Shown: piece by piece, positions 28,994 to 31,833 of the stretch | How the letters are laid out: each line of letters opens with the position of its first letter | Numbering within the stretch: the stretch's first letter is position 1 | Origin: Magallana gigas | Lineage: Eukaryota | NCBI RefSeq assembly: GCF_963853765.1 | Contig: NC_088858.1 | Coordinates: 22,258,001-22,322,000 of the forward strand | Direction: 5' to 3' | DNA length: 64,000 nt | The notes under the pieces: generated by a model | Seen by the model: only the letters and a program-made list of their open reading frames with translations | Database searches by the model: none | Told to the model about the DNA's origin: nothing | Made by a program: the position numbers and the translations under genes

Positions 28994-31833
28994 ATGCCGT
29001 ATGTAATGATCAGTACACAGATCAGACTGGTAAACAGAAAGCCTTATTGGTTTTTTAACAAATGTCTTTATCCTGATGAATGTGTTTTTTGCTTTAATAT
29101 AGTTTTTTACTATAAATTACATTTTTCATACATGTGTATGCATTTCCAATAATTTCAGTGTAACTCATTTTTTTACAGTTACATAAAGATATCTTCATTC
29201 CTTTACTAAGCCTATAGATTTTATTGTACATATATATAGAGGATGAACATTTTAATACAATAATGGGGAACGCCTTTGGAGTACACAAAATAATATTATC
29301 AAGCAAGGAGCTTTCAACTCCAGGCTGGGATTCAAACCTGGGCCCCTTGATTCTCTACCCAGGTGCTCTACCAACTGAGCTATCTAGCGCTGGTAATCGA
29401 ACCAGTCTGACTGTCACATTCCTCCCACCTAAAATGATCTTCGTTTCCGAGATCAACCCATGCTCTTCCCTTGGCAGGAGTTCACCTGTCAGTTCCAAGG
29501 GATGGTCACGGTACCAAATGTAACAGGATGGGAGAAATAATGAAGGACTAGACAGGGATTTGAACCTGGGTCCCCTGAATCTCTGTCAGGTGCTCTACTA
29601 ACTGAGCTATCTTGCACCGGCATTCGAACCTATATCTGATCATCACACGACTAAAAGAAAAATTCATTGTAAACCGTTTATTGTACCGGTATGTATGTGA
29701 TGGTTAGACCAGTTCTAATACAGACTCCAGATATCTCAGATGGTAGAGCCTGACTAGTAGGCCCAGGTTTGTATACCAGTCTGGTCTGTCATTATTTCTC
29801 CCTTCTCGTTACAGTTCATCTGGTGCAGTGCCAACCCCTGGAACTGACAGGTTAAGTCCTACCAGAGAGGAGCCTGGGTTGATTTTCAAGTGAGAATCAT
29901 TTAAGGGAGTAGGAATATGACAGTCAGACTGGTTTGAATACCAGTGCCAGATAGCTCAGTTGGTAGAGCTCCTGGCTTGAGATTCAGGGGTCCAAAATTG
30001 GAATCCAGGTCTGGTCCATCATTATTTCTCCCATCCTGTTACATGTGTTTATTAGCATCAACTCAGAAATGAAACATTATTTACTCAGTGTGCAAAAAAC
30101 TGATAGACTTATAAGTTTTGTATGTATATAACCTTGGGTGTTTAAGTCAGACTCTGAATATATGAAATCTTTAACCCTTTGCATTCAGAGTAGCTGGTCC
30201 GCTTAATTAAATTAAACTAGAGTAAATAAGCTGATATAATTAAGAAGTTGTTAATGGCTTATTATCAGCTGAAGCAAATAGATTGCCACTGTGCATTTAG
30301 ATTCCATTGTTTGTATGTATAAGACTAGATAGCCTGTTTTTTTTACTCCAAATGCTGCTGCTATCTGATCAGAGTTATGACCAATGTTAATCAAGTGAGC
30401 AATGTGGCCCCTTGGCCTCTTGTTTAATTACCTTAAATATGCAGATTTTTATTACCGTTACATTGATATAGTGTATGTAGGAAAGGTACAATTAATGAAG
30501 ATTTTATTAATTAATCTGTATAAATGTGCTGTAGGAGACAGGACCAACAGTGTGTGGAGATGAATGGAGTGACCCAGAGTTGATGGAATATCTGGGTGCC
30601 AGACTGACCAAAACTCTGGGAAACAACTTGTGAGTAACTGGTCAGTCTTTTATAAGCCATCCAAGTAAGAAATAAGCAACTCTCTATTTTCTTATGCAAT
30701 AATGATAAGTCATCCAAGTCTGGTAACTTATGTTTTCTTTCCTATATCTATTTGTAAGATATTGGGGTCAGCATCTATGAAATTCAAGAAAAGACTTATA
30801 ATGCTTTCAAGAAATAATATTCTTAATTAAATTGGCACGCGCACCATCAAACACGAAAAAAGAAACAGTTAAGTTTCTGCAGTTACAGTAAAACATACAG
30901 CAAAGTGGCAGAATGATCAATTTTAATTCAATATATTAAGCATTTATAGTAATTCATTAAAAGCATTAGCAGTACCGGTAATTCATTTTAAGCATTTGTA
31001 ATGAGCATTAAGGTGTCATAACAGTATTTCACTGAAGGTTCACGTCAAAACATGGCTGAGCCAAAATAATTCCCGAATTTTCCTTTGAATTCGGGGCGGT
31101 TCCGCACGCGACAGGAATTGATTTTTTTTATGAGATGAAAAACAATGTGTAAGAGGTCTAACTATCCCATTTTTGTAATAATGCGAGGTCATTTGAATTT
31201 TTGATGCGTGTTGTTTCCAGAGGGGGGTGAAAAGGCCCGGGCTTGATTTTCAAGCACGTGTGTAACTTCGAGGTAAACAAAGTCTCATGCCTTGCTGGAT
31301 GCACGTGTGTATTTTGCTAGAAAATTGTAAATGAAGCGTTGTTTAAAATGATGTCAAGCGGATTTTTTCCAGAAGTTCGTTTTGAATTTTTAATCTGTAT
31401 CTAAAGTTGTGCAATTTTGGTAAGAATATATAGTAAAATTTAATACTGTAGTGACACCTGCATTAAGCACTAAGGAGAATTAAATTGACAGCATGATAAG
31501 TGTGAATTCACGTACTGTAAAAGAAATTGCTGTAACCAAGTTTTACTATATGTTTTTAGATAAGGATTGTCAGAGAACACTTTGTATTTACTACTTAATG
31601 TTTACATCATTAGTCATAGAAACTGAATTTTAGTACATGTACTTCAATATTGAAATTGATTTTATGTTACTGGTTTTTTATTTATTTTTATTTATAGTCA
31701 AGAATATATTTCTCAAGACACAGTGCGAATTATTCTGAACAAGCTAGAGAAGAGAGGATACAAGCTTAAAGCTATGACTGGCTTAGGACAGACTTGTATT
31801 TGGACACTACATAAGGAACTCGATGATGAATGA
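28994..31833 (+). CDS. GCHFR: GTP cyclohydrolase I feedback regulatory protein, 3 exons, 88 aa (not in the ORF track)
   Basis: join(28994..29029,30535..30629,31698..31833) = 267 nt, GT-AG and in phase. Translation: MPYVMISTQIRL ETGPTVCGDEWSDPELMEYLGARLTKTLGNNF QEYISQDTVRIILNKLEKRGYKLKAMTGLGQTCIWTLHKELDDE*. It is collinear with recalled human GFRP (MPYLLISTQIRMEVGPTMVGDEQSDPELM...MTGVGQTLVWCLHKE). AATAAA at 31982. Confidence 0.95.
29321..29647 (-). mobile_element. Miniature LTR retroelement with tRNA-like LTRs (Helenus/TRIMp3-like), copy A; 3' LTR truncated
   Basis: On the - strand: 5' LTR 29647-29519 (TGTGA...GTTACA), TT, PBS TGGTACCGTGACC (29516-29504), PPT AGGTGGGAGGAA (29430-29419), and a 3' LTR from 29418 (TGTGAC). 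The LTRs contain A-box TAGCTCAGTT(A/G)GTAGAGC and B-box GGTTCAAATCC/GGTTTGAATCC. Confidence 0.8.
29696..30043 (+). mobile_element. Miniature LTR retroelement with tRNA-like LTRs (Helenus/TRIMp3-like), copy B
   Basis: 5' LTR 29696-29813 (TGTGA..GTTACA), degenerate PBS tggtgcagtgcc (29821-29832), PPT aagggagtaggaa (29903-29915), and 3' LTR 29916-30043 with A-box tagctcagttggtagagc. Flanks tgta/tgtg could be a 4-bp TSD with one mismatch. Confidence 0.8.
30391..30424 (-). mobile_element. Isolated 5'-end fragment of a HINE-like element
   Basis: The reverse complement aacaagaggccaaggggccacattgctcacttga matches the 5' end at 20070. Confidence 0.6.

Follow-up and report, generated by a model that had tools for sequence, protein, structure and literature searches.

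Why two decayed copies of one miniature retroelement should lie 48 bp apart, in opposite orientation and within a single intron is the question raised by a 64,000-nt stretch of the Magallana gigas genome (RefSeq assembly GCF_963853765.1, contig NC_088858.1, positions 22,258,001–22,322,000 of the forward strand), referred to here as the window and numbered from its first letter. The intron is the first of GCHFR, which encodes GFRP, and the two copies have tRNA-like long terminal repeats (LTRs). An earlier sequence-only reading of the window had recognized this arrangement and attributed it to local or targeted re-insertion near an existing site for RNA polymerase III (Pol III) and TFIIIC. We find that the pair very probably reflects two separate ancient integrations of the non-autonomous element Helenus-2C, an oyster member of the TRIMp3 class of miniature retrotransposons with terminal repeats (TRIMs), into GFRP intron 1, opposite in orientation and 48 bp apart. 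There is no evidence that the first copy guided the second.

Layout of the two copies

Sequence alignment within the window resolved positions 29319–30043 into two miniature LTR retroelements of the same build and opposite orientation, each consisting of an LTR, a tRNA-His primer-binding site (PBS), an interior of about 100 bp, a purine tract and a second LTR. Copy A (329 bp) occupies 29319–29647 on the minus strand and copy B (348 bp) occupies 29696–30043 on the plus strand; the pair is head-to-head, with 48 bp between the two opposed 5′ LTRs. The layout, orientation and spacing described in the sequence-only reading are present for both copies at the coordinates listed here, with the first element beginning at 29319 rather than at 29321, where that reading had placed it. 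TSD denotes target-site duplication; percentages are identities.

29315–29318, minus strand: copy A TSD, 3′ side, GTTG (LTR end set by the X1 allele, described below, which keeps a 28-nt tail)
29319–29418, minus strand: copy A 3′ LTR, 100 nt (last 28 nt deleted in the assembly; aligns to the young LTR until about position 99)
29419–29518, minus strand: copy A interior, 100 nt (90% to that of Helenus-2C)
29419–29431, minus strand: copy A purine tract, TAGGTGGGAGGAA
29503–29516, minus strand: copy A PBS, TGGTACCGTGACCA (TT spacer between 5′ LTR and PBS)
29519–29647, minus strand: copy A 5′ LTR, 129 nt, TG...CA (88.2% to the young LTR)
29648–29651, minus strand: copy A TSD, 5′ side, GTCG
29648–29695, no strand: host intron spacer between the 5′ LTRs, 48 bp
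29692–29695, plus strand: copy B TSD, 5′ side, TGTA
29696–29813, plus strand: copy B 5′ LTR, 118 nt, TG...CA (anticodon arm short of 10 nt)
29814–29915, plus strand: copy B interior (5-nt insert ahead of the PBS)
29821–29833, plus strand: copy B PBS, TGGTGCAGTGCCA
29903–29915, plus strand: copy B purine tract, AAGGGAGTAGGAA
29916–30043, plus strand: copy B 3′ LTR, 128 nt, now TA...CA (85.9% to the young LTR)
30044–30047, plus strand: copy B TSD, 3′ side, TGTG (3/4 with TGTA)

The purine tract of young copies is AAGGGGGGAGGAA, versus TAGGTGGGAGGAA in A and AAGGGAGTAGGAA in B. LTRs of roughly 120–130 bp bounded by TG...CA had been claimed throughout; the 3′ LTR of A is cut to 100 nt in the assembly, and the 3′ LTR of B now begins with TA. 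The claimed absence of coding capacity is borne out, as the open reading frames (ORFs) overlapping 29319–30043 are mechanical only and reach at most 99 aa.

Assignment to Helenus-2C

Searches of the genome that the window comes from (564 Mb in 29 contigs) placed both copies in a large family. A diagnostic 14-mer from the interior had 245 genome matches compared with 1 for its control, a 17-mer from the LTR tail had 584 compared with 0, and a first look yielded more than 1,100 candidate copies, indicating a repeat far beyond chance. Young copies measure 357 bp (LTR 128, interior 101, LTR 128) and have the ends TGTG...TTACA. Recovery of TSDs, a check proposed in the sequence-only reading, gave perfect 4-bp duplications in 19 of 23 young loci, the remainder including one with a 3/4 match, one without a match and one 3′-truncated copy; three of the 19 loci have a common flank.

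Our comparison reference was a natural genomic copy (L009:1501–1857) and not a consensus. Its LTR, carried by many young copies, is the published Helenus-2C_CGi LTR, and its interior differs from the published one only at a position that is variable among genomic copies. The LTR-tail motif of 2C occurs in no other family of the Kojima 2024 sequence file, and the LTRs of Helenus-2 and Helenus-2B differ from that of 2C at both ends. Copy A is 88% and copy B 85% identical to the reference copy. Helenus-2C_CGi has been described with an LTR of 128 bp, an interior of 101 bp, a total length of 357 bp and a 4-bp TSD (Kojima 2024, Biology 13:119, PMC10886601; Repbase), is represented in Crassostrea gigas by 1,124 LTRs and 402 interiors, and was assigned to the tRNA-His primer (PMC10886601). 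On this sequence evidence, A and B are assigned to the Helenus-2C_CGi lineage. Both keep an interior state, GGGTTG, that is also seen in the Saccostrea relative Helenus-1_SaGl, indicating that they derive from an older version of the 2C lineage. The earlier suggestion of a TRIM with tRNA-derived LTRs of the Helenus/TRIMp3 type was therefore right, and both copies belong to an element that already has a name; a 2024 publication had described Helenus-2C in this oyster, together with the tRNA-like LTR, the primer and the 4-bp TSDs.

A tRNA-like core with A and B boxes is also seen in SINE2 elements, and the units might instead be dimers of tRNA-derived short interspersed nuclear elements (SINEs) moved by the machinery of long interspersed nuclear elements rather than LTR elements. 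The structure of the family speaks otherwise: there are no poly-A or simple-repeat tails, the TG..CA ends are constant and the TSDs fixed at 4 bp, and the PBS directly follows the 5′ LTR as the purine tract directly precedes the 3′ LTR. Five loci (L006, L023, L005, L015 and L022; for example, G000:C9:4075533–4076347) also contain tandem arrays of the form (LTR-interior)n-LTR, with up to three interiors, inside one perfect 4-bp TSD. We regard the probability of SINE dimers as negligible. The sequence-only reading had itself named poly-A-tailed SINE dimers lacking PBS, purine tract and TSD as the observation that would overturn it; the other copies of the family carry PBS, purine tract, TG..CA ends and 4-bp TSDs. 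Either the arrays already existed when they integrated, or unequal exchange inside a single insertion produced them.

Some Helenus copies at separate chromosomal sites had identical or 91–93% identical flanks (L004, L005 and L013; L041, L048 and L050), suggesting that part of the family spread as passengers in a larger repeat or duplication and not by its own integration. A spacing of about 545 nt between LTR tail and interior at L041, L048 and L050 was considered as a new family layout and rejected, as these sites hold a piece of Helenus within a larger repeated unit.

tRNA-like LTRs and the tRNA-His primer

The LTRs of the window have retained their tRNA likeness to different degrees. On the Rfam tRNA model (gathering score 29 bits), the 5′ LTR of copy A scored 35.4 bits over a unit at 29545–29616 with D, anticodon and T arms, the sole above-threshold Rfam match across the 64-kb window. 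The 3′ LTRs of copy A (18.1 bits, unit 29317–29389) and copy B (17.5 bits, unit 29945–30017) fell below threshold, and the 5′ LTR of copy B gave no Rfam tRNA match because 10 nt of its anticodon arm are missing. ARAGORN called no tRNA in the window's four LTRs, leaving detection to Rfam only. None of the four combines consensus A and B boxes, and at least one box is damaged in each. The three arms that the sequence-only reading had named for copy A are thus confirmed, and the pair of intact Pol III boxes is found in no window LTR. Young LTRs present a different picture, as ARAGORN called each young Helenus-2C LTR (loci L002–L030; for example, L009:1529–1603) a tRNA whose type it could not name and whose anticodon (agag) has four bases; for one solo LTR (L017:1198–1273) it gave tRNA-Leu(gag). 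Because tRNA finders take young Helenus LTRs for tRNA genes, these elements can inflate tRNA counts in oyster genomes.

The primer assignment could be examined against the host gene itself. A tRNA-His(GTG) gene at L058:1446–1517 has the 3′ end ...CCTGGTCACGGCA; with CCA added, this end is complementary to the PBS at 14/14 nt in young copies, 13/14 in A and 12/14 in B, where one base has been lost. The earlier prediction of a tRNA-His-type PBS with one mismatch agrees with the 13/14 match of copy A. Gypsy-39_CGi, the proposed mobilizer of Helenus-2C, has been named as an autonomous element with the same tRNA-His primer (PMC10886601), and about 20 genome sites outside tRNA-His genes carry TT(C/T)TTGGTGCCGTGACCAGGA, the tRNA-His primer site of the Gypsy-39_CGi type. 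These sites are candidate autonomous helpers of Helenus-2C, judged by their primer-site sequence.

Same-strand pairs of the LTR-tail 17-mer often lie 7–15 kb apart on contig C1, a spacing that might have marked a large autonomous element sharing the Helenus LTR. This possibility was rejected at L056 (G000:C1:7400100–7408900), which is a 7.6-kb segmental duplication with one Helenus copy per unit and no ORF of at least 150 aa. In one of its units, the 5′ LTR and the interior are separated by an insert of about 500 bp.

We propose that the tRNA-derived unit with A and B boxes found in the 128-bp LTR would promote Pol III transcription, an idea taken from Kojima 2024 (PMC10886601), where Pol III transcription of Helenus is stated to be unvalidated. 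A host tRNA-His, annealed to the complementary PBS, would prime reverse transcription of the element RNA, second-strand synthesis would begin at the purine-tract motif, and the integrase of a presumed autonomous Gypsy-type partner would insert the resulting complementary DNA, leaving the 4-bp TSDs that flank the copies. In this reading, both A and B then decayed neutrally, chiefly at CpG sites, into dead relics.

Two separate insertions and their age

Decay is pronounced in both copies. The two LTRs of copy A are 78.6% identical and those of copy B 72.9% (Kimura distances 0.26 and 0.35), compared with 94.5–100% in 16 young copies, which are 97.5–100% identical to the natural young reference copy. 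Between 7 and 11 of 20 CpG-site bases have changed per window LTR, versus 6.5–11.5% of non-CpG bases, and the CpG count per LTR has fallen from 10 to 0–2. A and B are old, dead relics, and B is probably the older insertion. The loss of CpGs would fit a methylated oyster gene body; old intronic copies lose CpGs fast, consistent with methylation of oyster gene bodies. Elsewhere in the window, three plus-strand segments (44198–44254, 45087–45179 and 45192–45256) are weakly similar (68–72%) to the initial half of the Helenus-2C LTR and its interior; they may be remains of a Helenus-like element of about 1.1 kb that is far older or of another kind.

The flanks of the two copies bear on whether one insertion or two took place. 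TSDs match at three of four positions in each copy, GTCG/GTTG in A, where the single difference is a CpG transition, and TGTA/TGTG in B. The outer boundary of copy A was set with the help of a 1,024-nt contig of sequencing run X1 that spans 29046–30041 and adds 28 nt behind 29319 relative to the assembly. Read on the minus strand and by eye, 23 of these 28 positions agree with the family LTR tail, and with the X1 allele the 3′ LTR of copy A stops one base before GTTG, the counterpart of the GTCG beside the 5′ LTR. Sequencing run X15 lacks the 28-nt tail, like the assembly (indel at 29319/29320). We conclude that the 28-bp deletion in the 3′ LTR of copy A is recent and polymorphic and followed both integrations.

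The arms are inverted, close together and equal in layout, as would also be the case if a single insertion had undergone inverted duplication (palindrome formation). Against such a history, the 4-mers flanking A and B differ, and the host sequences on either side do not form an inverted repeat, showing short weak matches only. At 77%, A–B identity is lower than the identity of either copy to the family and close to the value expected of independent decay (0.88 × 0.85). The interior state GGGTTG common to A and B is no shared derived change, as its presence in Helenus-1_SaGl marks it as ancestral. We hold palindrome formation to be extremely improbable. The distinct TSDs of A and B imply separate insertion events, and we conclude that the pair most plausibly represents two separate integrations.

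Pairing and Pol III targeting

The sequence-only reading had gone further, attributing the pair to local or targeted re-insertion near an existing Pol III/TFIIIC site. In the targeted form of this idea, the Pol III/TFIIIC complex assembled on the tRNA-like LTR of the first copy tethered the integrase, so that the second copy landed beside it. Targeting of Pol III genes by retroelements is established, with Ty3 in yeast and DGLT-A/TRE in Dictyostelium as examples. Elements of this kind insert at a short fixed distance from tRNA genes or other Pol III units; ARAGORN found no cellular tRNA gene within about 1.5 kb on either side of young insertions at 21 independent loci (0/21), where the Helenus LTRs alone were called, and none in the 64-kb window.

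Whether inverted pairing is a property of the family was assessed from the coordinates of interior 14-mer matches, with 191 of the 245 sites listed and forming 181 loci. Among these listed sites, no two lie within 16 kb of each other on opposite strands except the GCHFR pair, and none of the other 180 loci has an inverted partner within that distance. The ten other close adjacent pairs (217–446 bp) are all same-strand tandem arrays. No opposite-strand LTR-tail partner within 5 kb was seen among the 100 listed of 584 LTR-tail matches, all on contig C1 and scanned by eye, and the C1 listing, also read by eye, contains one interior site with an LTR on the opposite strand at a distance of 1.1 kb. 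Apart from the GCHFR pair, one inverted juxtaposition was seen, at L055:4694–5163 (G000:C5:11286879–11287348), where an inverted LTR piece (positions 1–114) touches the 3′ LTR of a complete young copy without a gap. It counts in favour of targeting; against it stands the L055 junction, which has neither a TSD nor a continuation of the interrupted LTR on the other side.

Several observations weigh against two unconnected integrations. A second separate Helenus piece is present in 3 of 15 loci of 10 kb, two in the same orientation and one (L055) inverted, indicating local clustering. Under a chance model of uniform insertion, counting opposite-strand pairs with centres no more than 400 bp apart, the expected number of such pairs is 0.012 for 181 loci, 0.06 for 402 and 0.8 for 1,500; the proximity of A and B is thus somewhat unlikely, a result that targeting can also claim in its favour. 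Close pairing may reflect a regional insertion preference, for example for open chromatin. In addition, the TSD of each copy matches at only 3/4 positions, for which the chance expectation is about 5% each. Set beside these points, the inverted pair is a one-off in the genome, mildly improbable under a naive model and selected after the fact.

With no tRNA gene near any of the 21 young insertions, a sole inverted pair among the 191 of 245 interior sites listed and at least one Pol III box lost in all four LTRs, the proposed re-insertion near a Pol III/TFIIIC site is unsupported, and inverted pairing among the listed interior sites is confined to this pair. Targeting by a Pol III complex on the first copy seems to us decidedly unlikely.

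Intronic hairpin and RNA reads

The 725-nt pair folds as one long imperfect hairpin (ΔG −385.6 kcal/mol compared with −214 ± 9 for shuffled sequences, z = −18.8), and a contig from an RNA library (X9 record 18) is identical to 29574–29939. Both results favour the possibility that the hairpin of about 330 bp has been co-opted as a double-stranded RNA signal, whether for editing, for splicing or as a source of small RNA, acting on GCHFR or a neighbouring promoter. A long hairpin is nevertheless expected of any inverted repeat, and the arms carry no sign of selection for pairing: their complementarity is no better than independent neutral decay predicts, and the 28-nt deletion in one arm is polymorphic. 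Of the 845 raw reads covering the pair, moreover, 676 match at just 90–95% and come from other copies; neither locus-specific transcription nor editing can be claimed. Read joints between opposite strands (for example, 29519/29831) were considered as a signal from the locus and set aside; their likeliest source is reads of canonical copies, with one part aligning to A and another to B. Co-option is, in our assessment, highly improbable. Long double-stranded RNA is commonly made from inverted intronic pairs, which makes this one relevant to any study of RNA editing in GCHFR.

We also considered a functional history of the pair in either of two forms, that a first copy with intact Pol III boxes drew the second integration through TFIIIC/TFIIIB or that the intronic hairpin is now a double-stranded RNA signal at the RMDN–GCHFR promoter region, and judge it very unlikely. 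If true, guidance by TFIIIC/TFIIIB would make oyster Gypsy/Helenus a metazoan case of integration guided by a Pol III complex, which would be of interest; the present evidence speaks against it. Read as two separate integrations, the finding matters little beyond annotation.

Host gene context

The placement of the pair in GCHFR intron 1, made in the sequence-only reading, is borne out by the exon 1 pattern, the GT and AG splice sites and the Pfam GFRP match. That domain (PF06399) matches two exons just downstream of the Helenus pair, which itself occupies 725 of the 1,505 nt of the intron. Coding exons 1 and 2 as listed here both agree with Pfam GFRP.

28994–29029, plus strand: GCHFR (GFRP) coding exon 1, MPYVMISTQIRL (ATG start, in-frame pattern; GT donor at 29030)
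29030–30534, plus strand: GCHFR intron 1, 1,505 nt (GT donor at 29030, AG acceptor at 30533–30534)
30535–30629, plus strand: GCHFR coding exon 2, beginning ETGPTVCGDEWSDPELMEYLGARLTKTLGNN (Pfam GFRP PF06399, 47.7 bits)

The peptide encoded by exon 1, MPYVMISTQIRL, agrees with the N terminus of human GFRP. No reads spliced from exon 1 to exon 2 were recovered in the RNA reads, in which exon depth was near zero; the intron borders rest on the sequence together with Pfam.

High-copy repeats lie at 30314–30515 in intron 1, just upstream of the exon 2 acceptor, and at 30920–31525 in intron 2, with summed X15 contig depths of thousands to tens of thousands compared with about 12–20 in unique flanks. 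A 20-nt segment across the exon 1/intron 1 donor (29017–29036) is 90% complementary to part of the copy B 5′ LTR (29770–29789), probably by chance.

Comparison with known systems

The closest counterpart of the window copies is Helenus-2C_CGi itself, with which they share LTR layout and sequence, including the tail motif, as well as the interior, the tRNA-His PBS, the purine tract, the TG..CA ends and the 4-bp TSD. They differ from it in being decayed (88% and 85%), in having one 3′ LTR shortened by 28 nt and one 5′ LTR shortened by 10 nt, and in the damage to their Pol III boxes. Helenus-1_SaGl of Saccostrea glomerata (PMC10886601), a sister lineage compared by eye, has the same LTR architecture over 129 bp, an interior of 103 bp and likewise a tRNA-His PBS, and shares with copy B the form of the PBS that is one base shorter; it comes from another species, and its LTR tail and interior differ at many positions.

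More distant parallels lie in other small elements. Cassandra, a plant TRIM, and Ajax of nemerteans likewise carry the Pol III promoter of a small-RNA gene in a TRIM LTR and thus belong to the TRIMp3 class, but their promoter is derived from 5S rRNA, their TSDs are 5 bp long and their sequences are unrelated to Helenus. The bivalve element biv-TRIM (Satovic et al. 2019, PMC6934838) likewise occurs in tandem arrays and as solo repeats, whereas its terminal repeats are 202–218 bp long and it has no clear PBS and no reported tRNA-like unit. Finally, Ty3 and the Dictyostelium elements DGLT-A and TRE are the model behind the targeting idea, and the presumed helper of Helenus is also of the Gypsy (Ty3-like) type. 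Whereas Ty3, DGLT-A and TRE integrate upstream of tRNA genes at fixed short distances, none of the 21 Helenus-2C loci lies near one.

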